Shown here: positions 1 to 62,736 of the stretch, piece after piece | Position numbering within the stretch: the stretch's first letter is position 1 | Layout of the letters: every line of letters begins with the position of its first letter | Assembly: GCA_002269645.1 (NCBI GenBank) | Contig: NIVC01001912.1 | Coordinates: 1-64,000, forward strand | Source: Macrostomum lignano | Taxonomy: Eukaryota | Length of the DNA: 64,000 nucleotides | Reading direction: 5' to 3' | The notes under the pieces: model-generated | Told to the model about the DNA's origin: nothing | The model's input: only the letters and a program-made list of their open reading frames with translations | Database searches by the model: none | Position numbers and translations under genes: made by a program

Positions 1-246
1 ATGAATTTGGTCAAACTTTAGAAAAAACGGGAGAAAGCTAAAGGATTTTTTGACAATATTGGATCCAATTTTAGACCAGCTGTTCAGAAAATTTTTAATA
101 AATTAGGAAAAGATTTTAATATCATTGAAAAACACGACGGAAGCGGATTATATCTCGAAATGCGACCAAAAGCAGGTTCAGGAATTTTCTTAAATTCAAA
201 CGTTATGGGCAATGGATTGCTATTACCAAAAGCAGATCTCGAATAG
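1..246 (+). CDS. 3' end of a Polinton small protein with repeated GSGLYL/GSGIFL/GNGLLL motifs (core-protein-like)
   Basis: Manual translation ...KHDGSGLYLEMRPKAGSGIFLNSNVMGNGLLLPKADLE*, stop at 244-246; the 5' part is outside the window or frameshifted. Confidence 0.5.
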
Positions 247-330
247 GCTCCTGGGGGGAGGGTCTGGACACCAAAAACACAAAATTAAAAAATCAATAAT
301 TCAAACATTATATAAATTTTATTCTATAAA

Positions 331-3300
331 ATGGAAGCAATTTTAGCTCAAATCGACAACCTGAACTTAGAGCACAATTAATAGCTCAAATCGAGCACAA
401 CGAATTGCGATAGGGCTGAAATAGAAGCAAGAATTAGGGCAGAAAATGAGATACGTTTAGAAAGACAATTAAATGATATTGATAACCCAACCACAAGGAC
501 AAAATGGAGCTGAAGTAATATATATAGATATAGATATAAATACAAATTATAAAGAATATTTTAAACAAATGAAAGATAAATTAAAGACCATATTAAACAA
601 TTATACTATAAGGCCAAATAACAAACGACAGCCAATTAAGTATAAAATAGAAGTTGAAACAGAATTTAAAAAACCAAATATTCTTAATGCAAATTCAGAA
701 ATTGAAGTAATAAATAACTTTTCACAAGAATCATATAAAACATTATTATCAATGGGAAATTACAACAATCAATTCGATCAAATAGAAGCTGAGTTTGATG
801 AATGGATAGATAAGATGACAGAAAACGGATCTGGGTTTATATTTGTATCTGTAATTCAGCAATAGTAAAGATTGCACCTATAGAAATTCTTAAAGGACGA
901 TCACATATGAAGCTCAATTTAAATCACCTATGATTATAAATCCAGACAATAAAGATAATAAATGTTTATTATGGTGTTTATTAATTCATAAATATCACAA
1001 TCAAGTAGAATCACACATTAATAAAATATATAATTATAGACAATATGAGGATGAAATAATAATGAAAAACATATCATACCCAGTAGCAATAGATGATATA
1101 TATAAGATTGAAAAAATGAATGGTTTAAATATTAATGTGTTTACAATTGAAGAACCAAAAGATCTAGAAGAAATTCAACCGATCCAGAATGGTATAAGAA
1201 AGGTGTTATCTTGTTAAGCCAGCAACTGATATAACAGCACCAGATCAAATCGATCTTTTGTACATACAGCGCGAAAATGAAACACATTATATATACATAA
1301 AAGACATTAGTTCTTTTTAGAGAAAATAGAAATAGATATCCACTATGTAGAAATTGTTTCACATTTAAAAAGGATGAAACAGCTCTTAAAAACCACCAAC
1401 GATTTTGTTTAGATCACAAATTTACTAATGCTATAATGCCAGCATGAAGATGCAACCCTAAAGTTCCAACAACATTATATGGCAGTTAAAAAACCAATAG
1501 TAATATATGCTGATTTTGAAGCAACAAATGTTCCCTTAAAAGAATCACAGACAGTATCTGATGGTGAATGCACAAAAAAATTGGCACAACAGTTTCCGAA
1601 TAGTTATTGTATATATGTACACTCGTAGCTGATCATATATTTAAATCAAGGATGATTACTTACCACGGTAATGATGCAGCTAAGCACATGGCAGAATCAT
1701 TAGTAAATGTATTTGAATATATTCAAAATCAATATGATAAATTATCAAAAAATATTAATATGACAATAAGGATAGAGACAATTATAAAAATGCAACAAAT
1801 TGTTTTATGTGCAAAAGATATTTAAGTAAGAAAAATAAGATACGAGAACATTGTCATCTAACGGAATTATCGAGGGGCAGCATGTAGATCATGTAATGCA
1901 AAAGAAGGAAAAGGATGTAAGGAAATACCAGTATTTTTTCATAATGGTTCCGGATATGATTTTCATTTCTTAGTTCGAGAATTGCTTCATTTAGGAAAGG
2001 ATGAATATGAAATAAATATATTACCTAAAACATCAGAAAATTACATATCAATAACATATGGTAAGAAATACTCCCATCTAGTTTTTCTAGATTCCTTGAG
2101 ATTCTTATCAACATCTTTAGCAAATGTTGTTTCATCATTAGTTCCAAAACCATGGGATTTAGAAATAGTAAAGAAAAACTTTCCAATACTATTGAATCGT
2201 TTCAAAAAGAAAAACTATCCGAGGAAGAACTAATGCTATTAACTCGTAAGGGCATCTATCCATATGAATATGTAACATCTGAAGACGTATTTTTCATACC
2301 GAATTAACCCCAATTGAAAAGTTTTATTCAACATTATCACAAACAAATATAAGTGAATCGGATTATGAACACGCTCAAAAAGTATGGAAATACTTTAATT
2401 GTAAAACATTTAAAGATTATCATAATCTATATCTTAAAGCAGATGTTCTCCTATTAGCTGATGCATTTGAAAACTTTAGGAATCATACATATGAGAATTT
2501 TAAAATTGATCCCGCATATTGTTTCAGTGCACCGGGATTAACATGGGCTTGTGGTTTGAAACATACAGATGTTAAGATTGATTTACTAACTGATCATGAT
2601 ATGTTGTTAATGATTGAGAGAGGAATTCGCGGCGGATTCTCGGGTGTACTAGGAGATAGATATACTAAAGTAAATAATAAATATCTACCAAATTATAATA
2701 AAAAAGAAAAATCATCATATGTATTATATCTAGATGCAAACAATTTATACGGTGGTTGTATGAAACAAAAATTACCAATAGCTGATTTCCAATGGGAAGA
2801 TGACCCCGATTATTACAAAAATATTCCCGAAGGAAGGGGCTGTATCGTAGAAGTGGATTTGCAATATACTCGGGAAGCAAAAGCAAAAACATATAAATAT
2901 CCTTTAGCTCCAGAGCATTGTTCAGTTAATGAAGATGATTTATCACAAACACAAAAAGATTATCTTAAAGCAGATAATGCAAAACATCTAGCAACAAAAA
3001 AATTAATATTAAATTTACATGATAAGAAAAACTATGTAGTGCATTATAAGCTTCTACAATTTTATGAAAAGCAGGGATTAAAAGTGTCTAAAGTACATCG
3101 AACAATATCGTTTATTGAGGAAGATTGGTTAGCTAAATATATTGACTTTAATTCAAATCAGAGACAGATGTCAAAAACAAATTTTGAGAAAGATTATTGG
3201 AAATTAATGAATAATGCTTTTTATGGAAAAACGGTTGAAAATATTAGAGATAGAACCCAATTCCATTTAGAAAAGGATATTGATAAAGCAAAGAAATATT

Positions 3301-4234
3301 TCTCAAAACCTAACTTTAAAGATTTTATAAAATTTGATGATAACTTTATGGGTATTCATATGAGAAATAAAACAACAAAATTTCTTAAACCAATATTTAT
3401 TGGAATGGTTGTTTTAGATTATGCAAAGCTAGTAATGTATGAATATTATTATGATGTTATAAATAAAACATGGCCAGATAACTATCCAATATATGCAGAC
3501 ACCGACAGTTTGGTATTTAAGGTTGAAACAGATGACGGACGGAGCCGCGAACCAAAGGTTCGATGTCTATAAAGATATGGAAAAAATTAAGGATACATTG
3601 GATACCTCCGACTATCCGGATAACCATCCTTTAAAATCAGATCAAAATAAAAAAGTTGTACTTAAAATGAAAGATGAATTAAATAGCAAAATCATAACCG
3701 AGTTTATAGCAATAAGATCAAAATGCTATGCATTTAAAGTTTTAGGACAGGAGGGAGAGGTAAAAAAATAAAAGGGGTATCAAGGCAGCAGTTAAAAAGA
3801 TAACATTTGATGATTATAAAAACGTACTTTTAGATTACCTTAATACAATTGAAAATTATCATGCTCCACAATATCGATTAAATTCAGATAAGCATCAGAT
3901 GTTTGTCATCGAGACAGATAAAAAAACATTAAGTCCATTTGATGATAAAAGATATTTAGATGATAAAATTAAAACATATCCATATGGTTTAAAAGAAGAG
4001 ATAAAAAATATGATAAAAGATAAAAAACAAAAAGAAGATATAATAAGCAAATATAATGAATACAAAGAGGCAATAAATAATTATTATTACGATTGTGATT
4101 GCGAATCCGAATGTGATTGTGAATATAATACATTTCTAGAATATGAAAAAGATATAGATAATTATTATTCAACATTTCCAAAAGAACTTAAAAAATTAAA
4201 CAAGGAAAAAGTCTTGATAACTGGAAGAGATTAA
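331..4234 (+). pseudogene. polB: Protein-primed family B DNA polymerase (pPolB), broken by several frameshifts/stops (decay or assembly error)
   Basis: ORF pieces carry exonuclease motifs (VIYADFE, FHNGSGYDFHF, FLDSLRFL), polymerase motifs (YLDANNLYG, KLMNNAFYGK, YADTDS) and C-terminal LSPFDDKRY; aaaATG start at 331. Confidence 0.92.
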
Positions 4235-4438
4235 CAGAAAAATTACTTATCGGGTCTGTAAAAAACCAAAGCATGTAATTGTTTGAGCAAATCATTAACT
4301 TCAATTTCATATATTATTGAGCACCAATTATCCTCACAGTCGGCAGGGTAACTTAAACAATCTTTATTTTTTTCCTAAGTTTTTTTATTTTTCTAACAAG
4401 ACGATCAATTTTCAATTTCAATTACTATTTCAGCATAA

Positions 4439-4642
4439 TTAATTGCTTTTGTATAAAACGTTTTCTTTTATCCAAGTCGTATCGGATAGGAAACATATCA
4501 TCGTATAAATCAACTTCGTTCGATCACCATAATCACTATAAAACATATTATTTATTTTTTTATTAATATCATTAAGTTCACGCTCTTTAGTGATAAGGAT
4601 TTTTATCGTATCATCGATACGCGTGCTTTGCATTGTCTCCAT
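4439..4642 (-). CDS. Polinton hypothetical protein (contains a degenerate double-hairpin unit at 4605-4636)
   Basis: 67-aa ORF with aaaATG context inside the element; no recognised domain. Confidence 0.4.
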   Translation of the reverse strand: METMQSTRIDDTIKILITKERELNDINKKINNMFYSDYGDRTKLIYTMICFLSDTTWIKENVLYKSN

Positions 4643-4663
4643 TTTCTTATAAAAAATTTAAAC

Positions 4664-4993
4664 TTATTCGGGGTCATCCTCCCAAACCGAAGCCAATTTT
4701 ACAGTCCTATCACTCTTTTTATTTTTTGGTTGTTTTAGTTTAAATTGCAACCCACTCTCCAGACTGTATTTCATAACAAACGCTTTTGGTTTATTAATAA
4801 CTAAAACAGGAAAATTTTTAACATCATCTCCGCTTAGACATAAAATTTTTTGCCCATCTAATTGTAAAAATATTGATTGAAGCCCAATAAATTTAACCTG
4901 TCTCAAACATATAATATTATATTCTTTATTCTCCAATATATTGGGTGTGAGATAATTAATCACATTAGAATCGGTTTTGAACCAGCTCTCCAT
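4664..4993 (-). CDS. Polinton hypothetical protein
   Basis: 109-aa ORF with aaaaATG start like other viral genes; tightly packed. Confidence 0.55.
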   Translation of the reverse strand: MESWFKTDSNVINYLTPNILENKEYNIICLRQVKFIGLQSIFLQLDGQKILCLSGDDVKNFPVLVINKPKAFVMKYSLESGLQFKLKQPKNKKSDRTVKLASVWEDDPE

Positions 4994-5099
4994 TTTTAAT
5001 CTAAAAAAATAACAAAAAAATGAAAGACATTTATGTTTGTAATAAATGTAACGTGACTATGCACAGAGCTCAAACAGCAAACGGAGATATATATCATAT

Positions 5100-5531
5100 G
5101 TGTATTCATGTTCTAAAATATATCAATTTGAAAAAACAAAAAAGATTGAAAACTCATATTACTATTTTAAAAACACAATTTTAAGAAATCTTACAAGAGA
5201 CATTTCTCATCCAATTTTAATTCCCGGAAATAATGTTTATTTATATAATAACTTTTTCCATTTAAATAAAGGAAAGGGATTAAGTTCGAAAGACGCTGAA
5301 AGGATTTTAATTTTAGTTGGATATTATTTTAATTTTCTTATTCGAGAGAATACAAAGTTTATAAGGATAGGTAACATACCTAACGAAATGTTACTGAAAA
5401 AGTCATTGGAATTTTTATGTATTGATAAAAAATTTAAACCTAGGATTACAAGAGAATTACCACTTTGGGAAGAATATATAACATATGCATTAGAAAAACT
5501 AAACAACATTAAGTTCTACCGCACTACCTGA
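5100..5531 (+). CDS. Polinton hypothetical protein
   Basis: 143-aa ORF within the element; no motif recognised. Confidence 0.45.
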   Translation: MYSCSKIYQFEKTKKIENSYYYFKNTILRNLTRDISHPILIPGNNVYLYNNFFHLNKGKGLSSKDAERILILVGYYFNFLIRENTKFIRIGNIPNEMLLKKSLEFLCIDKKFKPRITRELPLWEEYITYALEKLNNIKFYRTT

Positions 5532-5622
5532 CCTCGGGCTTTGTACTCCCATACTCATAGTTTCGGTTTGTATTCAATAGTTTCTATCGGAGGAGCTTTG
5601 GGTTTGTCCAAACGCAATTCCT

Positions 5623-6172
5623 TCAATTCCATATCGGTAAAAGTTTCAACATCAAAATTCTATTTCTATCTTTTAAATATTTTTCATATAACTCAACCGC
5701 GGTTGATAATTCATGAATAGTTATCTCTCCGTCATCCAATATTTTTTGCACATATAAATATAATTGATTTTTATATTGTTTTGCAACATCTCTTAAAGAT
5801 TTATATTTTTCCTTTCTTTTTTTAAGATATAATTTAATTGCTAAAAGTATTGATAAGTTCCTGATCAATTCAAAACCTGATATTGAGCCAATTGAAATAC
5901 CTAAAAATAATTGAGATAAATTAAGAGTTGGAAATGATTGTAAAACACCTAAAACATTACACATAACATCGATAAGCTTCCAAATCCAATATTGAAAAAA
6001 TCCATATTTCTTATATGGTTTGAAACTCTTCTTACTTTTTTAGTATATAAATCATAATCATAGTTAATACGATCAACATTACTTAACATGTGACCCTTGC
6101 GTTGGTCGTGCATAGCACGCGAACCTTCGGTCGGTCAAAATGTTCCCTTTTATCTGCTTCAGATACCGACAT
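5623..6172 (-). CDS. Polinton membrane protein (hydrophobic segments, KILDDGEITIHEL motif); frame restored by one base missing in the hairpin unit at 6105-6136
   Basis: The 113-aa track ORF extends upstream to MSVSEADKREHFD... (ATG 6172) if one T is added in GGT(T)CG. Resembles the conserved Maverick protein with a 'KALxDGxIxxxEF' tail. Confidence 0.55.
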
Positions 6173-6256
6173 TCTCGTCTATTTTTAATAGCACCAAAAT
6201 GAATTCCCCACGCTCTTTGGGTATTTGCCCGGAGCTTAATAGGTATTGTATTGGAC

Positions 6257-6484
6257 TTATTCTTTCTTTTTTCTCCCATTTAAATCCAATTTCCAAAACT
6301 CTTGAAGTATAATATGATTTTTTAATAATTTAATTAATTCTTGAAGCTTCTTATTATCCTGAACATTTACAGTACTAAATAAAAATTTGGTATGAGATTT
6401 GAATGTTTTTATATTTGATTCTTGTTTAGGAATAGGAATAATAACATTATTTTGCCGCATCGATGGAGTTCTACTAAAAGCCAT
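6257..6484 (-). CDS. Polinton hypothetical protein
   Basis: 75-aa ORF with aaaATG start; may be frameshifted at its 3' end. Confidence 0.35.
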   Translation of the reverse strand: MAFSRTPSMRQNNVIIPIPKQESNIKTFKSHTKFLFSTVNVQDNKKLQELIKLLKNHIILQEFWKLDLNGRKKKE

Positions 6485-6570
6485 TTTATATAGAAATATT
6501 TAAGGTATTGTGCATAGCACGCGTATCTTCGATACGATCGAACCTTTGGTTCGCGACTTAGGCTTTAGCC

Positions 6571-8499
6571 TTAGGCGATTTCGGTTTGTGGCCGTTCCAA
6601 ATATGCGGTCGCAGCAAAATCATATCCTGCCGATGTGCTACCACAAACGGCTGCACCACGAATAAAATGTGCAGCATCCGATCCTCCAGTTCGAGCACCA
6701 AAACCCATAAGAGTTCCCGTTTTATCTAAATCTCCCCAAGTTCCACTATCATATGTAAAAAAGTTTTGCCCAATTAGCGTATATGTATTAGCTGATACAT
6801 TGTATGTGCTTATTTGATACCAAACTCTTTGATTTAAAATATTAATTTCAAAAAGATGCCAATCGCCGTTATCAATATTAGCATAGGTTATAGTTTGATC
6901 TGCGTCATTAAGAACATCATTACGAGCTGTTGCACCGTCTGATTTTATATTGCTCCAAACAACCCCAACTCTATCATGCCATTCACTCGCAAACACAATC
7001 AAGCCGGCGCGGGTTGTTAACCCGGATCCAAATTCACTTGTTGGACGTTCGTGACAATATGCATAAAACCAAACCGCATCAGCACCACTTCCTGTAGCAT
7101 TAGCAACTCGGAAATAGAAGGAGGCGGAGATATTACGAAAATGGGTGAAATTAAATTGCAACGCTCCAGACTGACCACTTGCTTCATCAGTAATTCTAGC
7201 TCCATTTTGATAATCAATATAAGTAGCGTTACCAACAAAACTTCCAGTTGGAAAAATATCACCGGCTGTGGTTGGGTTTTGATATCCAGTCCAATTGCAA
7301 ATTACAGGCTCGTACAAAGCGGCATCGATTGCAGGTATTCCATCCAATTTTATTTTATCATTAAAAGACATTCGGCCATCCGCCGTTTGTGTTACTCGCG
7401 TATCAACATAACCTTTAGTAACAACAGAACTGTTATTGTTTATAGTAGAGATATTAGTAATTGTATTACCTCCCATATCAATTGATTGATTAACCACTCC
7501 CAAATTTAAATCAAGAATTGTAAACGTCTGTCTATAAATCTGGAAGGTTGACAGACCCGGGTTGGTTGAACCCGAGTTGATGTAAGACAGAACAATCTGA
7601 AATATGAATATGTTTTATCAAAATTTTGTGTGACATTAATTGTTTGAGTTGAGTTATTTATTGCTACAGAACTATCCGCAGGTATTAATACGTCCCAACT
7701 TGTATTGTCATTACTTCCCTCAAATCGCCATGATGCTGGGTGCTCGGTTGAAGGTGATGGCCTACCACGTAAATCAATTTTATAACACATTATTGCGGAA
7801 GGGCATTGGACTTGAATCCAATAATCGGTTTGAGTATTATTGGTCGCCCAATCTGTTGCATTATCTCCATCAAAAGCTTTCCAGCTTGCAAAATCGGTTG
7901 TATTAAATGCTGTGCTGGCTGTAATTGCAAAACCATTTCCACTCCAATCTGACATAGTAGGTATGTGGCCGGTTTCAACCGTTTGGAATCGATCCTGCTT
8001 TAAGGCTCCACCTCCAACTAAATTATCAACTTCGGTTTTGGTATAGGAATCAGTTATATCTCTTTTTAAATTTAAGGAATTATCAACTTCAGTTTTGCTA
8101 TAAGAATCAGTTATATCTCTTTTTAAATTTAGGGAATTATCAACTTCGGTTTTGGTATAGGAATCAGTTATATCTCTTTTTAAATTTAGGGAATTATCAA
8201 CTTCAGTTTTGGTATAGGAATCAGCAACATTCCGTTTTAAATTTAGGGAATTATCAACTTCGTTTTGTATAAGAATCGGCCGTATTGCGTTTTAAATTTA
8301 GGGAATTATCTATTTGAGTTTTGGTATAGGAATCTGCAACATTTCTTTTTAAATTTAGTTTAGTATCAACTTCACTTTTTTTATAACCTTCATCTTCATT
8401 AATATATCGGTTATCTCCGAATGTAACACTTATTCCACCAGAAGTACCACCACCAGTACTTGATGTTCCGTTCCATGAGGGTGTTCCAGAAAATAACAT
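6571..8499 (-). CDS. Fibre/spike-like protein: 19-aa repeats + F5/8-type C (discoidin-like) domain + legume-lectin-like domain; two apparent frameshifts
   Basis: ORFs 8254-8499, 7506-7955 and 6571-7503 join into one frame after fixing indels near 8265 and 7575 (...GSTNPGLSTFQIYRQTFTILDLNLGVVNQSIDMGGNTITNI...). Motifs: SYTKTEVDN repeats; ASWKAFDG...W...WIQVQ; GSGADAVWFY. Confidence 0.7.
8031..8385 (-). repeat. 57-bp coding tandem repeat (~6 copies, SLNLKRDITDSYTKTEVDN)
   Basis: Unit aattatcaacttcggttttggtataggaatcagttatatctctttttaaatttaagg on the + strand. Confidence 0.9.
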
Positions 8500-8509
8500 T
8501 TTTTACTGT

Positions 8510-8977
8510 CTATTTTATAGAGTCTAAAATCATCTTAAATACTTCGGGGGGTTCCTTCGAGTTATTGATCGAACCTTTGGTTCGCGGACTCCGTCCGATC
8601 TTATATAAAAAATACAACGCAGCCTGTCCGCAATAACTTTTATCAAAGGTTTGAAACTGTCCGTGATAATCTCCACATAAACGATTTTTAGTATGATTAA
8701 ATTTGTCTTTTATTTCCTGTAACGGAGGAAGCGCGTATGAATCAAAAAAATAAACAAGTTTCGGTTTTGAATAAACTGCTGACCAATGAACACCATTTTC
8801 TTTTGTTGTTTCAATATTAACAATGAAAGATCCATATCTTGGTAAGTCTTTTATCTCATCCCGCATAACACATCTGAATGGTTTTATTTTTAACTGCCTC
8901 GCCCAATTTGTTAATTCGATATTGCTTGTTGTGTCTGTTCCATATCGTTGTTTAAAATCATCCCACGTCATGGTCAT
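8510..8977 (-). CDS. Adenain-like cysteine (maturation) protease
   Basis: GVHW, FDSY and QFQTFDKSYCG catalytic motifs; carries an in-frame 10-aa hairpin-derived insert (GRSPRTKGSI). Confidence 0.9.
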   Translation of the reverse strand: MTMTWDDFKQRYGTDTTSNIELTNWARQLKIKPFRCVMRDEIKDLPRYGSFIVNIETTKENGVHWSAVYSKPKLVYFFDSYALPPLQEIKDKFNHTKNRLCGDYHGQFQTFDKSYCGQAALYFLYKIGRSPRTKGSINNSKEPPEVFKMILDSIK

Positions 8978-8978
8978 T

Positions 8979-9152
8979 TTATGTTCCTGAAAAACTCTTG
9001 GTTTTAGTTAGTTTCGTAGGTGTGGGTTTTAATAGTTCCTTTCGGATTTTTTCTGCCTGTAATTGTTTCAATTTTGTTAGTTCGATTTCATAATTATCCT
9101 TTGCGTTTTGAACTTTTTCCGTTTGTTTTTTTAAAGCATTGTTGTTACCCAT
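8979..9152 (-). CDS. 57-aa basic small protein (MGNNNALKKQ...), below the ORF-track cut-off
   Basis: taaaaATG start; exactly fills the gap between penton and protease; N-terminal Met-Gly. Confidence 0.55.
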   Translation of the reverse strand: MGNNNALKKQTEKVQNAKDNYEIELTKLKQLQAEKIRKELLKPTPTKLTKTKSFSGT

Positions 9153-9162
9153 TTTTACAGTA

Positions 9163-9948
9163 CTAAACCTGTTTTATACGTAAAATTATTGTTATTGACT
9201 GCCCACCAAAACTTATTAATCTATCGCTTTCATCTACAATCCTAATATAAATTGATTGAACATTATATTGATTTAATGGGTAATATATTGGGGTTTGAGG
9301 TGATACAATCATTTTCTCTCCAATTGGAACAGCAAGAAATGGGATTGAATAAATAATTCCACGTTGAACCAAAACTCCGTTATCGTCTGTTATATAACCA
9401 CCGTTTGAAATGTCGGTTGTTATATTAATTGTATTTACTCCACCCTCTATATTTCCAACTGTATCACCGGTGCTTGATGTGGTAACTATTCGGGAATTAA
9501 ATCCAAGTATGGTTCTGAGTGAATTTGCAATTGTGAAATCAACCTGATATCCGGATTCGAGTGATAGTGTGAATCTTCCAGACGGTAAATCAACACCTAT
9601 AACAATTGCTCCTGCTACCCAATCTCCATTAGCTGTTAATTCTCCTTCTATATAAGCATTCAAATCAGTATAGCTATACGCACCCGGGCTAACACTAAAT
9701 GTTGTCCAATTGGCTCCGGAATCTTTAGAATATCTAAATTGATTATTTGTTGCATTAATTAATTGAGGCATGTTGAAAACCGAAAATAGTATTAAACCTA
9801 TTTGATAACTTAGGCTTTGATCGAGTTGTAATGGATCGCGCAATTGAATCCGTTGCTCGCTGGTTGTCATTATAAACTGTAATGTTGTACTAAATTTTGA
9901 ATTAGTTCGATCTACCAATTGTTTTATAGTATTTAAATTTGTAGTCAT
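9163..9948 (-). CDS. Minor capsid protein (penton, single jelly-roll)
   Basis: Maverick penton-like motifs (INATNNQFRYS, PGAYSYTDLN, LRTILGF, YYPL, VDESDRLISFGGQSITIILRI); taaaaATG at 9948. Confidence 0.8.
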   Translation of the reverse strand: MTTNLNTIKQLVDRTNSKFSTTLQFIMTTSEQRIQLRDPLQLDQSLSYQIGLILFSVFNMPQLINATNNQFRYSKDSGANWTTFSVSPGAYSYTDLNAYIEGELTANGDWVAGAIVIGVDLPSGRFTLSLESGYQVDFTIANSLRTILGFNSRIVTTSSTGDTVGNIEGGVNTINITTDISNGGYITDDNGVLVQRGIIYSIPFLAVPIGEKMIVSPQTPIYYPLNQYNVQSIYIRIVDESDRLISFGGQSITIILRIKQV

Positions 9949-9981
9949 TTTTATAGTGGGAAATCGTGCCATAGGCACGAA

Positions 9982-10773
9982 CTAAGTCTCTTCTTCCTCA
10001 TTATCTTCTTTTATCAGATCTCTTAAGATTCGATTTTTCCTTTCTAACCTAGGGTTGATATATATATGTTTGTATTGGCTATCTCCCAAATTTTTTTACA
10101 CAAGCTTTTAAATGGTTTTGTATCCAATCCAGGATTAAATCTAGCGTGTATATTTTGTAAATCATAATTATCTAAATCAAACATTACACAACAACTTGCA
10201 TTCTTTTTTATAATCGATTCTAATTCTCTAAAGGACTGTGTTAGATAAAAAGCTCCGATTCCATCTCCTCTACCACTAACAAAAATTTCCTTTTGCAATT
10301 CTTGATCACCGTCATTAATACAATCATCAAAAATAATTAGTGTTTTATCATTTTTTGGAATTTGATCATAGCCTAATCGGGTTGATACTCTAACAGTTGG
10401 GGCTCGTTCGGTGATGTTTTCTGGTTCGAACCTTTGGTTCGCGGACTCCGTCCGATCTTCTGCCATTTTTTACATAAATCCTCAATGTCATCGAGTGTAA
10501 ATCGCGGTTCGTCATCATCCTCATATTGCTCATATGCTCTTAACATTCTAAACAAGACATCTTTTTTTAATTTGTTTTTTAATCCATGTTTAAGAAATTC
10601 ATAATATTTTATTCTAGGTTTATTAGTATAAATTATTAAATTATTATAGTCTAGCATTCCATCGTTGTTAACAGGTCATAAACAAAGTGTGTTTTTCCTT
10701 TACCCGACCCACCAATTACTAAACAAAGAAAAGGATCATTTGGAAATATTTTATTGTGTTTTGCTTTTACCAT
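9982..10773 (-). CDS. A32/FtsK-like genome packaging ATPase (apparent frameshifts near 10650, 10470 and 10060)
   Basis: Walker A GGSGKGKT (~10700-10725), Walker B LIIFDD, SGRGDGIGAFYLTQS, IIKKNAS. ATG at 10773; probable C-terminus ...RDLIKEDNEEEET*. Confidence 0.88.
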
Positions 10774-10825
10774 TTTTTAAGTAAATAATTTAAAGTGGGG
10801 CGACGGTCGGAGACCTGCACTCATT

Positions 10826-12298
10826 TTACAATGGTGCGTCCCGAACAACCGTGCCATCAGCTTTAGCAATTGACAAATATTCCTCTAGAAACAATACGTG
10901 GGCGTCGATTGCCTGATTACCGGTTTTATTAATCTCTAACATATAATTAAGTCCAATATTGGCTATGTTTTCTTTCTGTGCCGTTAGATCATAAACAACC
11001 ACTGGATGGATGTTTAGAAACTCTGTGGGTGTGTACTGAGGAACGGCATATGCTTCATTTTTGGCATAATCGTGATAATATTTTATAAAATCATTAACAT
11101 CATTATTTGCAATATTTAGATTAAGAGGATCTTTAACCGGATAGTATTGGTCATCAACCTGCAGGCGGATATTCTGAACATTAAACTCGTTAATTGCAGC
11201 AACTGCGTTGTCTGTTGCGGTAGCTGCTTGTGCTGCTATGTCACCCGATTGAAGCCAATATAAATCCCCATTTGCTCTTTTACTCCTTCTGTTTGTTATC
11301 CTAAACCAAACAAAAATATATCTCACCCGACGTTTTGATGTCAGTATTTGCCACTGGAATGAATCCTGGTTATTATTAATGGTTCGCATAAAATGTCGAC
11401 GATTCAAATAAAATATTTCCTGATCATGCGTTAACTGATTATCGATGTGTTTTAAAAGTGGGGCTGTTACCTCAATAGTTGGTACGACTAATTGAATTGA
11501 ATCTATACGAACTGCTATATCGGTTGAAATTGAGGTTCCATAAAGTATCCTAGGCTGATATCCACCAGATATTTGCAACTGTATCCCAAATTTTAATCCT
11601 TTCCATACCCGATTTGGTGAGAAAAACCCAAATAGTGGAAAGATTGAAAAGTCCTGCTCATATGCTGTTGCTGTGGTTAAAACCGCGACTGGGAATTTAT
11701 TCTGACGATCTATAAAACCGGTGTTAATAGCTTTTGTATTAGTCATAGTGGTTACAACTGGAACTATATTGGTATTAAGGTAAACAATTAGAGCTGCAGT
11801 ATCTGCACCAGCTGCGTTTTGTACATTAGGGAAAACTACTGCTTGACCATTACCTTTATCCGGCATCCACCCAACATTATCACCAACTTGTTTTGATAAA
11901 TAAGTATAATTTAAATGTTTCAAAACTCCATTAATCTCTGCGGGATTTGATGCTGTCTCAACCTCGGCTCCATTAACTGATAGTTGGGCTTGGGAAAAAC
12001 ATTTATAAAACCAATCATTTTCTATTATTATTCCGGATCGATCTGCGATATCTCCGGCTGCAAGAGCAGTTCCATCATTTCTAGTATATAACCATCTAAC
12101 ACGGAAAAATGCATTTTTCATATCCAATATAGTGTTGGTTGCGCCGATGTCAAAAGTTACCGTTCCAGTAGTAAAGTTATTTGAATTATCACTTGTTGGT
12201 AGGGTATAATTTAAATCTCTTGCTCTGACCTCATTAATATACTGTCGGTGCTTTTTGAAATGAAATTTATCACTCCACATAGTTTTTGTTTCAGCCAT
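10826..12298 (-). CDS. Major capsid protein (double jelly-roll)
   Basis: Intact 490-aa ORF with Maverick MCP-like N-terminal motifs (FDIGATNTILDMKNAFF; FSQAQLSVNGAEVE) and C-terminal VVVYDLT; lies next to the ATPase and penton. Confidence 0.8.
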   Translation of the reverse strand: MAETKTMWSDKFHFKKHRQYINEVRARDLNYTLPTSDNSNNFTTGTVTFDIGATNTILDMKNAFFRVRWLYTRNDGTALAAGDIADRSGIIIENDWFYKCFSQAQLSVNGAEVETASNPAEINGVLKHLNYTYLSKQVGDNVGWMPDKGNGQAVVFPNVQNAAGADTAALIVYLNTNIVPVVTTMTNTKAINTGFIDRQNKFPVAVLTTATAYEQDFSIFPLFGFFSPNRVWKGLKFGIQLQISGGYQPRILYGTSISTDIAVRIDSIQLVVPTIEVTAPLLKHIDNQLTHDQEIFYLNRRHFMRTINNNQDSFQWQILTSKRRVRYIFVWFRITNRRSKRANGDLYWLQSGDIAAQAATATDNAVAAINEFNVQNIRLQVDDQYYPVKDPLNLNIANNDVNDFIKYYHDYAKNEAYAVPQYTPTEFLNIHPVVVYDLTAQKENIANIGLNYMLEINKTGNQAIDAHVLFLEEYLSIAKADGTVVRDAPL

Positions 12299-12332
12299 TT
12301 TTTTAAGTTAAAAAAGTTTTTTATGTTAAAAA

Positions 12333-12998
12333 ATGAGTCAATTTATGGACGTTGATGGAGAGTTAGCGATTTATAAAGAGAAGCAAAGATATTCTGATTT
12401 TGTTAGAAATTTACAAAAAAGAAAGTTAGGAATACAATTAGCTGGCGAAAGATTTGCTGCTCCTTTTGTTAATCCTATTACTGGGAAAATTAGTGAACTA
12501 GAAAAAACAGATAAAGACCTTCTGGAAAAAATTGCTACGAATACTGAGCCAAAAGAGGATGAAATTTTGGATGAGCCGCCTGCTTATGATGTTGATCAAG
12601 CTCAATTGAGAGTTGCAGAGTTTAGGGCTGCAGATAGGGATGGAGTTGAACAATTTCCAAGAGTACCAGCTAGTATTGCTGTGACAGATTTAGGTAATAA
12701 TAATTATCGAATTGGTAGAGTTGATAAAAATCGGATTGAACTATATAGAGAATTGGGTGGAGCATATAATATTATTATGAACCCTAGGGTAAAATTTAAC
12801 CCTGAATTATATACTAGGGATGAATTAGTAAGTGCAAAAATTTTTTATGATGAGTTAGGAGGAGCTGTTAAAAATACAAGTTTGTATAAAAGAATTATTA
12901 TTTCTATAAATAACAAACCAGCTGTTGGAGAAGGATTTAAAACACCGCGAAAACTTGTTTTAGCTGCTGCGAAAGCTGCTGGACATACTGGTGTTTAA
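12333..12998 (+). CDS. Polinton conserved hypothetical protein
   Basis: 221-aa ORF with aaaaaATG start; C-terminal LVLAAAKAAGHTGV resembles the 'L..A...AGNT' tail seen in Maverick proteins. Confidence 0.6.
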   Translation: MSQFMDVDGELAIYKEKQRYSDFVRNLQKRKLGIQLAGERFAAPFVNPITGKISELEKTDKDLLEKIATNTEPKEDEILDEPPAYDVDQAQLRVAEFRAADRDGVEQFPRVPASIAVTDLGNNNYRIGRVDKNRIELYRELGGAYNIIMNPRVKFNPELYTRDELVSAKIFYDELGGAVKNTSLYKRIIISINNKPAVGEGFKTPRKLVLAAAKAAGHTGV

Positions 12999-13025
12999 TT
13001 AATTGTTAAATTTATTTTTTATAAA

Positions 13026-13655
13026 ATGGAAACTAAAAAGATTTGTAGTCGATGTAAAGAAGAGAAACCAATGACTAAAGATTTTTTTAGATGGAGAAAT
13101 GATTCAAAAAAATTTAGAAATGATTGTCGATCTTGTGAGAAAGTTATATCAAAACTGTGGAATAAAAACAATAAAGAATATATAAAAAATAAATATCACA
13201 CTGATGAAAATTACAAACTTATTATCACCTCACGAAATAGAATAAATCAACTATTAAAATCAAATAATGCTCGAAAAAATAATCATACTATTGATTACCT
13301 TGGTTGCTCAATTGAATTCTTTATTGATTGGTTAAATTTCACAAAACATTATTATGTTCCAAAAGACTATGGTGGTGCTTTACATATTGATCATTTTATT
13401 CCTGCTTCTTCATTTAATTACAAAGACGAAGATCATATGAAAAAGTCTGAACATTGGACAAATAAAAGATACTTAGCTGCTATTGATAATAAAACTAAAT
13501 TTGTTAAACAACCAACAATTGAAGAATTTGCAAAACAATTGGTGCTATCATGTATTTTTAAGGCTATAAAAAATGAGCAATCATGCGACGCATGCGAACC
13601 GAAGGTTCGATCGGACGAAGTCCGCGTTCCTTCGGAACGATCAATTAGTATTTGA
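13026..13655 (+). CDS. Free-standing HNH endonuclease with N-terminal CxxC...CxxC zinc ribbon
   Basis: KICSRC...DCRSC; YLGCSIEFF; LHIDHFIPASSF...HWTN..L...DN.TK, the pattern of large-DNA-virus/phage HNH nucleases. Confidence 0.85.
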   Translation: METKKICSRCKEEKPMTKDFFRWRNDSKKFRNDCRSCEKVISKLWNKNNKEYIKNKYHTDENYKLIITSRNRINQLLKSNNARKNNHTIDYLGCSIEFFIDWLNFTKHYYVPKDYGGALHIDHFIPASSFNYKDEDHMKKSEHWTNKRYLAAIDNKTKFVKQPTIEEFAKQLVLSCIFKAIKNEQSCDACEPKVRSDEVRVPSERSISI

Positions 13656-15213
13656 AGGAGGATTGTTAGATGTTCAAAAAGGATTAACAAGCTTACCGAG
13701 CGTTTTTACTACTGGGAGGTATACAAATGAATTACACATGCCGTCTTACAACTTCGCAGGTTAACCCGTGGCCTGAGTGAGGAAGGCAATGTCCTTGCTA
13801 GTCACTATTTGTGGCGACATCTTCAAATTGCGTGAAACCCGTCATACAGCTTCAAGTACCACTTCAATTGAGAAATCTTTTGAAGGAACAGAGGTAACTC
13901 CTCTTCCCAATGGTAAAAAGCTTGAAGACATGGTGGCAATGCGCAGCCAAGCTCCTAAGTATTTTAAATATAAGGAGAAGGTTCAGAGAGCAGACGGAGA
14001 TGGGCGGTAATTATCGCCGCTTAAGGTGTGCTCCAGCCTCATTCGAAAGATTGAGGGTAAACTGCCGGGGACTCGCTTAGATTTGAGATTAAATCCTGAC
14101 AATACTCCAAAATCTGATTCAATTCCAATAAATGGTATTGACTGGTTAGCATATTATCATGACTTAGCATACAGAGATGCTGACAAGAACCCGCCCGAGG
14201 AAGCATTAAGATTAAAACATGAAGCCGATCAAAAAATGATTCAAGGATTAGATAACTTGCAGGGATTATCGGTAGGGCAAAGATTAACTAGGTGGATGGT
14301 TAAAAAGATCTTGCAGTCTAAAGTTAAATTTGGTTTGGGAATTAATTACAACCAACATGGAAATAATTGTGTCGAGTGTTTATTATTAAGTGGTGGTGGG
14401 TTAAGTTCTGATGAGGCAAAGATTCTTCATAAAGAATATCGAAAACCGAAATTTTATAGAAAAATCATGAACTTCAAAAAGAATGAAATTTGGTATGCTG
14501 ATTTAATGTCGATGCCGAACGAAAGAGGATATAAATATATCTTAACCATATTAGATGGTTTTACTCGATACGCGTGGGCTGTTCCTTTAAAATCCAAAAA
14601 GGGAGAGGAGGTTGCTGCTGCTTTTAGAAGTCTTGGAGAAAAAAGTGAACGGTTGTGTGTTGATGAGGGAAAAGAATTTTACAATCCTCATATGTATAAA
14701 TTATATCATTTTGAAAAAGGACAAGAAAGGAAAAAAGACGCGAATGGGGAGTATATTAATAAAATTTATTCTATTTATGGAGAAAGTAAAAACGCATTAA
14801 TAGAAAGATTTAATCGAACTTTAGGTAAGAAATTATGGTTTCAGTTTAGTCTTAATGGAAACCAAAAGTGGGTAAAAATATTACCAGACGTTGTAAAAGA
14901 TTATAACAATTCATATCATTCGGCGATAAAGATGACTCCTCAACAAGCTTATAACAAACCTGAAAATGTTAAGGTTACTTTTGGAGAATTTGAAAAAAAG
15001 AAAACTAAAGGTTTTAAAGTTGGTGATTCTGTTTATATCTATAAATGGAAAGATAAGTTTGAAAAGGGAAGAAAAGGATATTGGAAAATAAGTGAGAAAT
15101 TTACTATCAGTAAAGTTTTAAATACCAATCCCACAACCTATATAATTGCTGATAAGGATGGTGAAGAAATATTGGGTTCTTTTTATGAGAACCAGATAAT
15201 GTCTGCGAACTAA
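13573..15213 (+). CDS. PLA2 (parvovirus VP1u-like)-integrase fusion, join(13573..13761,14065..15213), 445 aa after splicing
   Basis: Spliced junction gives ELHMPSYNFAG|PGTRL (Ca-binding loop), followed by YYHDLAY and EAD; rve integrase D-D-E (WYADL, CVDEGKEFYN, IERFNRTL) and SH3-like C-terminus (FKVGDSV...GSFY). Both exons are in the same frame. Confidence 0.92.
13762..14064 (+). ncRNA. Group I self-splicing intron, subgroup IC1-like, 303 nt, no internal ORF
   Basis: 5' exon ends in U and the intron ends in G. P1 CAGGU/GCCUG. P AAAUUGCGUGAAA (13825), Q AAUGCGCAGC (13938), R GUUCAGAGAGCA (13981), S AAGGUGUGCUCC (14023). P7 GAGCA/UGCUC, P3 CAUCUUC/GGAGAUG, P5abc with A-rich bulge and L5b GAAA, CCUAAG...UAAGG receptor in P6, P8, P9 with GAAA loop, P9.0 AG/CU. 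Confidence 0.95.
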
Positions 15214-15223
15214 GTTCAAACAG

Positions 15224-15421
15224 TTACTTAAGACAACATGGTAGTAAATTTTTTATTACAAACAAAAACAATATTATTACTATTATTGTTACTAATATTA
15301 TTATTGACATTTGTTCAACTGTTATCAAACTTAAATTTTCATTAAGTTCATTAATTGGAACATTTCCGATGTAGGAGTAATCGTGCAAAGCACGCGAACC
15401 ATGGGTTCGATTTACCTTCAT
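15224..15421 (-). CDS. Small single-pass membrane protein (probable start MKVN at 15421)
   Basis: aaaaaaATG context; C-terminal hydrophobic run IIILVTIIVIILFLFVI; in-frame 30-nt hairpin unit at 15380-15409. Confidence 0.55.
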   Translation of the reverse strand: MKVNRTHGSRALHDYSYIGNVPINELNENLSLITVEQMSIIILVTIIVIILFLFVIKNLLPCCLK

Positions 15422-15494
15422 TTTTTTATATATATTTTTCACAATAAATGTCGTTTCTGTTATAGAATAATAGTTCATTTTTTAAATATTTTTT

Positions 15495-15809
15495 TCACAT
15501 AAAAATTTCACTTTCATTCTCTGAATCACTGGTTTCATATGAACTATTTGTTGATTCGGAATCTGTTGATCTAACCTCCCAATCATCCGAATTTAAATAA
15601 TCTCCAAGTTGAAATATTAACTCACCCTCTTGTTCTAAATCATACATCTCATCTAGCTCTAATGGATAAAGTTTTAGGTCATGCTTGTCGTCATATTTTA
15701 AATAAACTTCATCAATTATTCCATTCAAAATATGTTGTTTTATTATCTCTGCATTTTTAGCAACAGTCTCAAAAGTATCACTAACAGAAAAGGTGTAAAC
15801 TCGGGTCAT
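15495..15809 (-). CDS. Acidic Polinton hypothetical protein
   Basis: 104-aa ORF with aaaaATG start and a D/E/S-rich C-terminus. Confidence 0.5.
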   Translation of the reverse strand: MTRVYTFSVSDTFETVAKNAEIIKQHILNGIIDEVYLKYDDKHDLKLYPLELDEMYDLEQEGELIFQLGDYLNSDDWEVRSTDSESTNSSYETSDSENESEIFM

Positions 15810-15913
15810 TTTTAGTAACAGAAAAAGACCCTTCGCGCCTGCGGCGCGGCAGCGGGTTATAGAGATTTGGAAGTGTTAGAAGTGTTGGGGGTGTTGGAAG
15901 AATTGGGGAGTGT

Positions 15914-16177
15914 AGTAGTAGGTAAAACGACGAGTACAGATCAGCCCTTTTTTAATGGCCGTTTATAAGGTTCCAGAGGGGGGACACGAGGGGAGTGTTG
16001 GGAATTAAAAAGAAGTGTTGGGATTGATTTTTATTGTTAGGGGGTTTTTAGATGTCTTTTTGTGTTAATTGTGATTAGATGTGTTTTTTTATTTACCCCC
16101 CGTGTCCCCCCTCTAGACCCTTAAAACGGTCATTAAAAAAGTGCTCTGGGTCTGTACTCGTCTTTTTACCTACTACT
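15914..16177. repeat. Polinton right terminus with internal inverted copy of the terminal ~80 bp
   Basis: 15914-15995 (AGTAGTAGGTAAAACGACGAGTACAGA...GGGGGGACACG) is the imperfect reverse complement of 16096-16177. Confidence 0.85.
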
Positions 16178-16399
16178 GGGGATTCCGATAGAGATGGGGA
16201 TTTGTGTTGATTGGGGATTTCAACAGATATGAGGATTTGTGTTGATTGGGGATTCCGATAGAGATGGGGATTTGTGTTGATTGGGGATTCCGATAGAGAT
16301 GAGGATTTGTGTTGATTAGGGATTCCGATAGAGATGGGGATTTGTGTTGATTAGGGATTCCGATAGAGATGGGGATTTGTGTTGATTGGGGATTCCGAT
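16178..16399. repeat. 35-bp intronic minisatellite (Polinton insertion site)
   Basis: Unit ggggattccgatagagatggggatttgtgttgatt, ~6 copies. Confidence 0.9.
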
Positions 16400-16487
16400 C
16401 AAAATGGGACTTATATTATAATGAAAAATTCTAAGAGACCGAGATTCTGAGGAGGAACTAAAACTGCAAGACGAAGAAACATCTCAC

Positions 16488-18302
16488 CGTAGTCTGGTGG
16501 ACAGCCTCGTAGGTGAGGGTGCCCGAGCGGGACACGATGCCGATCTTGCCGGGCTTGTGAATATGCCCGGGCATGATGCCAATCTTGCACTGGCCGGGAG
16601 CGATCACGCCCGGACAGTTGGGCCCAACTAGGCGACTTTTGGTCTGCTGGCTGAGCCGGCGGCGCACGCGGACCATGTCGTGCTGCGGGATGCCCTCGGT
16701 GATGCACACAATCAGCGGCACCTCGGCGTCCAGAGCTTCGTGTATAGCGGCCGCCGCGAACGGGGCGGGCACGTAGATAACTGTGGCATCGCACTGGGTA
16801 GCTTTGCGCGCCTCCGACACGGTGTTGAACACGGGCAAGTTCAAGTGCGTCTGGCCGCCTTTGCCAGGCGACACGCCGCCAACCATCCTGGTGCCGTACT
16901 CGATTGCCTGGGTGCTGTGGAAGGTGCCCTGCGGGGATTCGGGATGTCAGGCTTGATGCGGTTGGGGGCATGAGTGAGTGATTGCATTGAGTTGGGATCT
17001 GGATAGAATCCAGTTGGGATCTGGATAGAATGCAGTTGGGATCTGGATAGAATGCAGTTGGGATCTGGATAGAATCTGGTTGGGATCTGAATAGAATCCT
17101 GCTGGGATCTGGATAGAATCCAGTTGGGATCTGAATATAATCCAGTTGGGATCTGGATAGAATCTGGTTGGGATCTGGATAGAATCTGGTTGGGATCTGG
17201 ATAGAATCCAGTTGGGATCTGGATAGAATCTAGTTGGGATCTGGATAGAATCCAGTTGGGATCTGGATAGAATCTGGTTGGGATCTGGATAGAATCTGGT
17301 TGGGATCTGGATAAAATCCAGTAAGGGATCTGGATAGAATCTGGTTGGGATCTGGATAGAATCTGGTTGGGATCTGGATAGAATCCAGTTGGGATCTGGA
17401 TAGAATCCAGTTAGGATTTGGATAGAATCCAGTTAGGATCTGGATAGAATCCAGTTAGGATCTGGATAGAATCCAGTTGGGATCTGGATAGAATCCAGTT
17501 GGGATCTGGATAGAATCCAGTTGGGATCTGGATAGAATCCAGTTAGGATCTGGATAGAATCCAGTTAGGATCTGGAGAGAATCCAGTTGGGATCTGGATA
17601 GAATCCAGTTGGGATCTGGATAGAATCCAGTTGGGATCTGGATAGAATCTGGTTGGGATCTGGATAGAATCTGGTTGGGATCTGGATAAAATCCAGTAAG
17701 GGATCTGGATAGAATCTGGTTGGGATCTGGATAGAATCTGGTTGGGATCTGGATAGAATCCAGTTGGGATCTGGATAGAATCCAGTTAGGATTTGGATAG
17801 AATCCAGTTAGGATCTGGATAGAATCCAGTTAGGATCTGGATAGAATCCAGTTGGGATCTGGATAGAATCCAGTTGGGATCTGGATAGAATCCAGTTGGG
17901 ATCTGGATAGAATCCAGTTAGGATCTGGATAGAATCCAGTTAGGATCTGGAGAGAATCCAGTTAGGATCTGGATAGAATCCAGTTGGGATCTGGATAGAA
18001 TCCAGTTAGGATCTGGATAGAATCCAGTTGGGATCTGGATAGCTATATGGGATCCAGATGAAACAATATAACCTATTGGGATAGAGACAAGGGCCTAATC
18101 TTAAAAATACAGGCAGTATCTAAGAGTGAAGGCGAAATCCCATAAGCCTCACCTGCTTGCCAGTGAAGCCCTGGCAGATGACTCGCGTATCCTTGTTAAT
18201 AGCCAGGTTGGACCGAGTGGTCGCATAGTCAGACAGGAGCCGACTAGTTGCTAGGCGAGTCTGCCTAATGGCCAAAAGTATTCGGGAAGAGGCAAACGAC
18301 AT
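16488..18302 (-). CDS. SUCLG1: Succinyl-CoA ligase alpha subunit, exons 1-2 (18153..18302, 16488..16928); remaining exons lie beyond the Polinton
   Basis: MSFASSR...[14 protein letters not shown]|[25 protein letters not shown]...LVGPNCPG...[15 protein letters not shown]; canonical GT-AG phase-0 junctions. Confidence 0.96.
16990..18042. repeat. 22-bp minisatellite in SUCLG1 intron 1 (~48 copies)
   Basis: Unit gttgggatctggatagaatcca; contains an internal CTGGAT-aga-ATCCAG inverted repeat. Confidence 0.95.
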
Positions 18303-28149: not shown

Positions 28150-30012
<1,863 letters not shown>

Positions 30013-30014
30013 AG

Positions 30015-32122
<2,108 letters not shown>

Positions 32123-55600: not shown

Positions 55601-55616
55601 CTGATTGTTCGTCATC

Positions 55617-62040: not shown

Positions 62041-62675
62041 ATGTCGGAGGAAGTCCGAGACGGAGAGCAGACCATAACGGCGTCCAGCTCGCAGCAGCAG
62101 AATGCTCAACCCCCTGCTCAGCAGCAGCAACCGACTGCAGCGCAAGTCGGCCACGGCTCCTTGAAGCCATTGGCTCTGCACAACACTGCCTCGGTTGCCT
62201 CCTTCGGCTCTGTCGTCGGTGGCGCCGCTCCTGCAAGCGCCGCAGGCGCCGCTGCAAGCACCGACGTTTGGCCAAAAGGCAAAGTGAACTACGTGATGGA
62301 CAAGCAGCTGGGCAGCGGCGCCACCTCGCGGGTGTACAAAGCATTCTGCCCGCTGAAGAATAACGCCGAAATAGCCGTGAAAGTGGTGAACCTGGACAGC
62401 AGCTCCGTGTCAATGGACGAGTTGCACAGAGAGACTCAGGGCATGAAGAAGCTGAGACACGAAAATATTGTTGCCTATTATGGCAGCTTCATCGAGGATC
62501 AGTTTCTGTACATTCTGATGGACCTGTGCGAGCGTTCGCTACTGGATATGATTAATCACGTCAAGGCCACCAGGGACATCACGCACGGTGTGCTGGACGA
62601 GTGCACCATTGCCACTATAATGCGAGAGGCAATCAAAGGATTGCAGTATATACACGAGAATGGCATTGTGCATCG
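62041..62675 (+). CDS. OXSR1: STE20-family kinase OSR1/SPAK (fray), first coding exon
   Basis: LGSGATSRV, AVK, SMDEL..E, HENIVAYY.SF, GVLDECTIATIMRE, IVHR|GT donor; OSR1/SPAK signature (paralogue assignment uncertain). Confidence 0.85.
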
Positions 62676-62736
62676 GTGTGTTCATAATTCAGCTATATGT
62701 TTACGTTTAGTTCAATATTTTAATCGCTCAGCTTTG

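Follow-up and report, generated by a model that had tools for sequence, protein, structure and literature searches.

Does a protein-coding gene in the genome assembly of a bilaterian animal carry a self-splicing group I intron, and does the element that holds the gene belong to the animal? The question is raised by a 303-nt insert near the start of the 222-kb contig NIVC01001912.1 (222,534 bp) of the Macrostomum lignano assembly Mlig_3_7 (GCA_002269645.1), of which positions 1 to 64,000 of the forward strand were analysed as one 64-kb stretch (hereafter, the window). Group I introns are known from bacteria, phages, viruses, organelles and nuclear ribosomal DNA (rDNA), and are scarce in the mitochondria of early-branching metazoans (PMC3984707). 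The insert lies within a virus-like element at the contig start, in a gene that combines a phospholipase A2 (PLA2)-like domain with an rve integrase (hereafter, the PLA2-integrase gene). The explanation that we favor, and regard as probable, is that the insert is a canonical group I intron without an open-reading frame (ORF), lodged in the PLA2-integrase gene of a Polinton/Maverick-type element that lies in the M. lignano assembly.

The intron and its RNA anatomy

To the Rfam covariance model RF00028 (Intron_gpI), the window gave a match at 13752-14055 on the forward strand that covered the full length of the model (positions 1-253 of 253) and scored 65.9 bits, above the gathering score of 50 bits, with an E value of 1.7e-14 on the whole window and values of 1e-14 to 1e-16 across four scans. 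RF00028 was the sole Rfam family above gathering score in the 64-kb window, and split permissive scans of 1-14400, in which the intron was recovered as a positive control, gave no other Rfam family at E<=1. One permissive scan of 1-16500 in E-value mode was blank, which conflicts with the four positive scans; it was treated as an anomaly and was not used. Chance resemblance is ruled out by the covariance-model score over the full model together with the exact splice junction described below.

A complete canonical group I intron is present at 13762-14064, with the bounds and helices that had been proposed in an initial annotation of this DNA made from its letters. When a hand-proposed structure was checked helix by helix with a script, base pairing was intact at 101 of 102 positions (Table 1). 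The exon strand of P1 is formed by the last five bases of exon 1 (CAGGU), and the U.G pair at the 5′ splice site as well as the terminal G of the intron, both of which had been predicted, are in place. P3 and P7 together form the core pseudoknot. Folding without constraints, for which the z-score was -2.45, again gave the P5abc arm as well as the hairpins of P6, P8, and P9. The CCUAAG/UAAGG element of the P6 arm is one base off the classical tetraloop-receptor pairing and may act as a tetraloop receptor. Judged from its sequence, the RNA has every part required for the two-step, guanosine-initiated reaction. The intron has a GC content of 45.5%, compared to 32.4% for exon 2, and a search for close phage relatives of the intron found none, the only match being a 48-nt core match to Brochothrix phages.

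Set beside the generally known layout of the IC1 introns of Tetrahymena-type nuclear rDNA, the RNA has the same P2 and P2.1, a P5abc arm with an A-rich bulge, a GAAA L5b, a receptor-like P6a/6b, P9.0, and a terminal G, whereas it lies in a protein-coding gene and not in rRNA, is much shorter, and has no P9.1/P9.2 extension. The label IC1-like, as first given, therefore fits the architecture and stands as a resemblance rather than as membership in that subgroup. The P7 and P4 helices deviate from the Rfam consensus as paired changes. These had been taken as compensatory changes that reveal selection on the fold, of which the pairing holds; being measured against the family consensus and not as covariation among relatives, the changes show a sound fold and not selection in this lineage.

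Should the transcript self-splice, as its sequence predicts, only the spliced mRNA would encode the full PLA2-integrase of 445 residues. In unspliced RNA, translation would stop at the first intron codon, which is an in-frame TAA directly after the last codon of exon 1.

The interrupted gene and its splice junction

The insert splits the calcium (Ca)-binding loop motif of the PLA2-like domain, the residues ...YNFAG standing on one side of it and PGT on the other. Downstream of the insert, exon 2 matched Pfam rve with 32.0 bits (1.6e-7), just below the cutoff of 32.6, and foamy-virus (PFV) integrase structures at 1e-6. Exon 2 also matched PF08398, the parvovirus-type PLA2, with 15.7 bits over profile positions 21-68 only; a match that starts at position 21 is explained by the first part of the PLA2 domain being expected on exon 1. 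The PLA2-like part of exon 2 carries an H-D-x-x-Y motif.

The junction was examined by comparison with related proteins. Exon 2 alone, used as a query, retrieved 451 relatives, nearly every one of them from a metagenome assembly; the 120 best were examined. Most of the 451 carry PF00665 and PF08398 together, and 51 of the best 120 read across the junction without interruption. When exon 1 and exon 2 were aligned as separate rows with 18 longer relatives, the end of exon 1 and the start of exon 2 fell in adjacent columns, as the proposed split of the loop had implied, and all 18 relatives were continuous there, with G-PGT in 15 and G-AQT in 3. The 51 continuous relatives and the adjacent exon rows therefore confirm, at single-base precision and on evidence separate from the RNA model, where the splice junction lies. 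Removal of exactly 13762-14064 restores a Ca-binding loop that the relatives encode uninterrupted.

In the family of 13573-15213 and its relatives, the rve integrase has the PF08398 PLA2 as its N-terminal domain, and in some PLA2-integrase relatives a chromodomain (PF00385) is added.

Table 1 Coordinates of the intron, its helices, the interrupted gene, and other features in the window
Feature	Position	Strand	Remarks
Polymerase region	473-4234	+	Family-B motifs A, B, and C in order, by eye in the translation; broken
F5/8 type C (discoidin) domain ORF	7506-7955	-	Pfam PF00754, 2.1e-12
A32-like packaging ATPase	10044-10657	-	Pfam Pox_A32 E 0.0077, below threshold; broken
Putative major capsid protein ORF	10826-12298	-	Intact, 490 amino acids (aa); named from position and size only
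HNH/endonuclease-VII-like ORF	13026-13655	+	Free-standing, 209 aa, intact
Exon 1, PLA2-integrase gene	13573-13761	+	63 codons, ATG to ...YNFAG; aligns to N-termini of 18 relatives
Group I intron	13762-14064	+	303 nt, no ORF; opens with in-frame UAA, terminal G at 14064
P1	13757-63 / 13769-75	+	7/7 pairs; U13761.G13771 at the 5′ splice site
Internal guide sequence (3′ strand of P1)	13769-13775	+	G13771 opposite U13761
P10	13765-68 / 14066-69	+	4/4 pairs, with exon 2
P2	13776-83 / 13792-99	+	8/8 pairs
P2.1	13801-05 / 13811-15	+	5/5 pairs
P3	13818-24 / 13996-14002	+	7/7 pairs
P4	13829-34 / 13940-45	+	6/6 pairs
P5	13839-45 / 13930-36	+	7/7 pairs
P5abc-type three-way arm	13846-13929	+	P5a; P5b with GAAA loop (13872-75); P5c; AAAAA bulge (13915-19) on the 3′ side of P5a
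P6/P6a/P6b	13946-13982	+	CCUAAG (13954-59) facing UAAGG (13971-75); P6 2/2 pairs
P7	13988-92 / 14029-33	+	GAGCA/UGCUC, 5/5 pairs; encloses P3′ (13996-14002) and P8
P8	14003-08 / 14013-18	+	6/6 pairs; region 14003-18
P9.0	14035-36 / 14062-63	+	2/2 pairs
P9	14037-44 / 14049-56	+	7/8 pairs, GAAA loop
Exon 2, PLA2-integrase gene	14065-15213	+	Intact ORF, 382 codons; begins PGTRL; rest of PLA2-like domain, rve core, C-terminal domain
Element/host boundary zone	15914-16399	.	264-nt inverted repeat, then 35-nt tandem repeat x6.4
Succinyl-CoA ligase alpha exon (CoA-binding domain)	16458-16886	-	Pfam CoA_binding 1.4e-20; adjoins the element

The intron in relatives and the probable nuclease upstream

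Among the best 120 relatives, seven start 1-13 residues before PGT, with residues unlike the end of exon 1 in the family. In P0002 and P0039, with identities to exon 2 of 59% and 58%, respectively, the N-terminal peptide of 13 residues matches, at 11 of 13 positions, an intron-internal ORF of the window that starts at 14026 and is the translation of the 3′ strand of P7, P9, and the 3′ tail of the intron. Because the peptide so matches the translated 3′ end of the intron, P0002 and P0039 must, on the evidence of their protein sequences, contain this intron, and in the identical position. The relative P0008, which represents a cluster of 34 sequences, has the first two residues of this peptide in common and a shorter tail. 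P0012, P0026, and P0031 have Met immediately before PGT, and therefore a start-type codon ending in G where the intron-less genes have the glycine codon. Five further relatives that start at the junction, P0008, P0012, P0026, P0031, and P0079, probably contain the intron as well. A search for the counterpart, short ORFs ending at the junction, returned no candidates with exon 1 as the protein query.

At the protein level, the intron thus appears to be optional and patchy in the family, and to sit at the most conserved motif of the PLA2 domain. Such a scattered presence at a strongly conserved position is what intron homing between co-replicating genomes would leave behind, and we infer that the intron may spread by homing among co-replicating relatives.

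A candidate for the nuclease that such homing would employ lies directly upstream. The ORF at 13026-13655 stops 106 nt short of the intron, and its last 83 nt lie, in another frame, over the start of exon 1. It matched the PHROGs families endonuclease VII (5.5e-11) and HNH endonuclease (4e-5), and a search of the PDB with its sequence gave only a weak match to Hpy99I. Relatives of the ORF numbered a single weak match in a word-indexed search and 9,489 in an exhaustive search, of which the best had 48% identity; none of those seen was a close relative. When the ORF was aligned with 29 relatives, H123, N146, N155, and K158 were invariant, and D122 and three Cys were near-invariant, a pattern that, read from sequence, is that of a zinc-bearing beta-beta-alpha-metal nuclease. 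The AlphaFold model of the protein had a confidence score (pLDDT) of 91.8. The ORF is probably an HNH-type nuclease.

Its role can be approached by analogy. In the collaborative homing of phages, ORF-less group I introns are found with neighboring free-standing homing endonucleases (PMC3984707). The locus described here is alike in its ORF-less intron, its highly conserved coding site, the optional presence among relatives, and the adjacent HNH-type nuclease gene. In phages, cleavage of the intron-less site was shown experimentally, whereas the nuclease on the flatworm contig is known from position and sequence. That the ORF at 13026-13655 is a free-standing homing nuclease acting in trans on intron-less alleles is a tentative proposal, which we would back less readily than its opposite.

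The end of the nuclease ORF, where it overlaps exon 1, also contains a copy (13595-13609) of a GC-rich palindrome, CGAACC-N3-GGTTCG, followed by a second, similar palindrome, and these lift the GC content of exon 1 to 43.9%. Six copies of CGAACC-N3-GGTTCG occur at about 3.5-15.4 kb, all of them in the element, compared to 0.06 expected by chance. The palindrome might be a 3′-end or regulatory hairpin, or a tiny mobile palindrome.

The element, its genomic setting, and competing explanations

The element was assigned to the Polinton/Maverick type with moderate confidence. The initial annotation had called it a Polinton outright, and the Polinton-type rve integrase, seen in the Pfam and PFV integrase matches and in the PF00665 of the relatives, supports this in part. 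The remaining hallmark genes were less clear. The polymerase motifs were seen by eye, in a region that is split over all three frames into seven stop-free stretches, each of 75 aa or more, and a piece of this polymerase gave no match in Pfam, in the PDB, or in phage genomes (tblastn). The ATPase consists of two overlapping stop-free stretches in two frames, i.e., with one frameshift. The 490-aa capsid-like ORF had no family match, and its single-sequence structure model (pLDDT 29.5) was unusable. An ORF of 155 aa has the catalytic residues of the Ulp1/adenain type, as seen by eye, and a penton-like ORF has the right size and place and is without a family match. Both PLA2-integrase exons and the nuclease, capsid-like, penton-like, and protease-like ORFs are uninterrupted.

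Mlig_3_7 was assembled with Canu, Pilon, and SSPACE (PMC5730564). The window contains no N, and the join of element and flank lies within a Canu contig, not across a scaffold gap. The element adjoins an exon of the alpha subunit of succinyl-CoA ligase, and exons for the C-terminal half of this protein would lie beyond or under the element. The element had been described as integrated beside this gene (SUCLG1). The animal assembly and the adjoining exon stand, and the statement of integration was too strong; integration in the flatworm genome is likely, given contiguity in one Canu contig. No pair of terminal inverted repeats was found in the element, the left end of which is cut off by the contig start.

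Between the last ORF of the element and a 35-nt tandem repeat (x6.4, 16177-16399) lies a near-perfect inverted repeat (15914-16177) with outer arms of 27 nt that are 96% complementary. This inverted repeat could be a terminal structure of the element, a miniature inverted-repeat transposable element, or an assembly artefact. The tandem repeat has short blocks in common with a 22-nt minisatellite (x48, 16990-18042) that fills an intron of the succinyl-CoA ligase gene, a likeness that hints at a host origin of the boundary repeat.

Beyond the boundary, the host flank contains an intact ORF at 36807-38006, 21 kb away from the element, micro- and minisatellites, four exons of an RtcB tRNA-ligase gene, and the first part of a protein kinase gene (55605-59702 and 62041-62760, both on the forward strand). 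Host exons have a GC content of about 50% and host introns of about 28-30%. A 559-aa ORF at 29469-31148 (forward strand) begins in a (CT)n microsatellite and continues into a GIY-YIG-type motif, seen by eye and without a Pfam match; it is like the endonuclease of Penelope-like retroelements, and this remnant, too, was seen by eye only.

How firmly can a group I intron without an ORF, in the PLA2-integrase gene of a flatworm Polinton, be held? That the insert is no ribozyme, and is instead a chance likeness or an ordinary spliceosomal intron, has a negligible probability. Nothing speaks for it beyond the single anomalous blank scan, and against it stand the full-model E values of the four positive scans, helices that all pair, and the same intron 3′ end kept in relatives only 58-59% identical in protein. 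A spliceosomal intron was also considered directly and rejected, as no GT...AG pair at these bounds would leave the frame and the conserved G-P-G motif intact. Points that do weigh against the favored explanation, or against its extension to homing, concern the copy number of the intron, the nuclease, and the state and origin of the element. The intron DNA was analysed in one copy only, and no near-identical paralogue was present among the protein matches, the best of which (72%) was from a metagenome. Neither the nuclease ORF nor its 29 relatives matched a Pfam family; the Foldseek matches of its model were almost all to HNH domains (Cas9 HNH, BrxU, ScoMcrA, Hpy99I, VcaM4I) and were individually weak (best E 0.13, TM <=0.34), and it is the position beside the intron, and that only, which suggests a link between the nuclease and this target site. 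The element is cut by the contig start, the polymerase and ATPase frames are interrupted, so that the copy may be dead or may contain PacBio indel errors, and the sequenced worms were fed a diatom (Nitzschia), with no contamination filter mentioned in the assembly paper (PMC5730564).

Some of these points would also follow if the intron were real and the element foreign, that is, if the first 16 kb of the contig were a polinton-like virus (PLV) of a protist, from the diatom food or another culture microbe, that had become attached to flatworm DNA through a chimeric read or a mis-assembly. Such an origin would account for an element truncated at the very end of a contig, for a boundary of a 264-nt inverted repeat and a tandem repeat, a setting prone to assembly artefacts, and for close relatives that are all metagenomic and none near-identical, with 4 of 120 listed from NCBI records; the worms, moreover, ate Nitzschia, no decontamination step is mentioned, and RF00028 matches are known in protist PLVs (PMC12220804), to which the present case would then add one more. 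The GC content of 31.9% in the element, compared to 42.3% in the host part, points the same way, but host introns are equally AT-rich (about 28% GC), and composition therefore does not separate element from host. The sequence is, however, continuous inside a Canu contig with no N gap, the 35-nt boundary repeat resembles the minisatellite of a host intron, and the broken polymerase and ATPase frames are more in keeping with a decaying endogenous copy than with a virus that replicates, although read errors could give the same picture. On balance, we consider a foreign element rather improbable. Somewhat less improbable, and still not what we expect, is a dead endogenous copy in which the intron is intact only through recent insertion and is neither transcribed nor spliced in the worm; this fossil would be compatible with the favored explanation of what the insert is. 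A polymerase in seven stop-free pieces over three frames, an ATPase in two, and the truncation at the contig edge are in its favor. The 101 intact pairs and the uninterrupted exons, nuclease, capsid-like, penton-like, and protease-like ORFs argue against it, and the frame breaks may be assembly errors in AT-rich PacBio sequence. The group I intron in a Polinton-type element of this assembly thus remains the explanation that we hold to be probable. Its fullest form, a splicing-competent intron in a bilaterian nuclear genome, carried by an endogenous Polinton and still homing among animal-associated Polinton viruses with the HNH nuclease in trans, we think unlikely.

Relation to known group I introns and implications

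Introns of this kind have precedents among small DNA viruses of protists. RF00028 matches in endogenous PLVs of the protists Paulinella micropora, Desmodesmus armatus, and Rhodomonas lacustris were published in 2025 (PMC12220804). These introns are about 300-380 nt in length and ORF-less, match the same Rfam model, and lie in a protein-coding gene, as the present intron does; they are held by small integrated DNA viruses of the double jelly-roll type, to which the element on the flatworm contig may be comparable. Their hosts are protists, however, and the gene in Rhodomonas is an ORF of roughly 50 aa upstream of the capsid gene, whereas the intron on the flatworm contig is in a bilaterian assembly, in an element with a polymerase-like region and an rve integrase, and in a PLA2-integrase gene cut at the Ca-binding loop. 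Within the literature searched, with most subscription journals outside the search, no report of a group I intron in an animal Polinton, Maverick, or adintovirus and no paper treating Polintons in Macrostomum were found; the one paper that names both deals with Tc1/mariner transposons. The statement of the initial annotation that no description was known consequently holds, within this search, for animal Polintons and adintoviruses, and gives way to the 2025 report for protist PLVs. What is new is the context, namely a PLA2-integrase gene within a Polinton-type element of a bilaterian genome assembly; group I introns in PLVs were already known.

Giant viruses also carry group I introns, e.g., in RNA polymerase genes (PMC10675990, PMC5871332). 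There, too, an intron of the self-splicing type sits in a protein-coding gene that is both conserved and essential in a DNA virus of eukaryotes, although the giant-virus introns often have endonuclease ORFs of their own and their hosts are protists or algae, while the present intron is ORF-less and in a Polinton-type element of more than 16 kb. In animals, the literature searched has group I introns only in the mitochondria of non-bilaterians (PMC3984707, PMC5633667). Those organellar introns are found in cnidarians, sponges, and placozoans and often encode LAGLIDADG enzymes, in contrast to an intron that is on a nuclear-genome contig of a bilaterian and in a virus-like element. The interrupted gene has a partial parallel as well. 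PLA2 domains occur in Polintons, and in adintoviruses PLA2X has a virion gene to itself and carries a pX-like tail (PMC8502044). Common to both cases is a PLA2-like domain of the parvovirus type (PF08398) within an element of the Polinton class, and they differ in that the PLA2 of the flatworm-contig family is the N-terminal domain of the rve integrase.

If the element is integrated, the range of group I introns would come to include a bilaterian genome as well as the Polinton/adintovirus class. If the predicted splicing is true, the nucleus of an animal would contain an mRNA that needs ribozyme splicing, which makes this locus a concrete and testable case, and a viral mRNA of the RNA polymerase II type would rely on a ribozyme for its reading frame there. 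The patchy intron at one conserved codon boundary and the adjacent HNH gene suggest that homing shapes these viruses as it does phages, and, if so, the intron/endonuclease lifestyle of phages would operate in DNA viruses of animals. For annotation, the locus serves as a warning that a Polinton gene that looks truncated may be split by a self-splicing intron rather than decayed.

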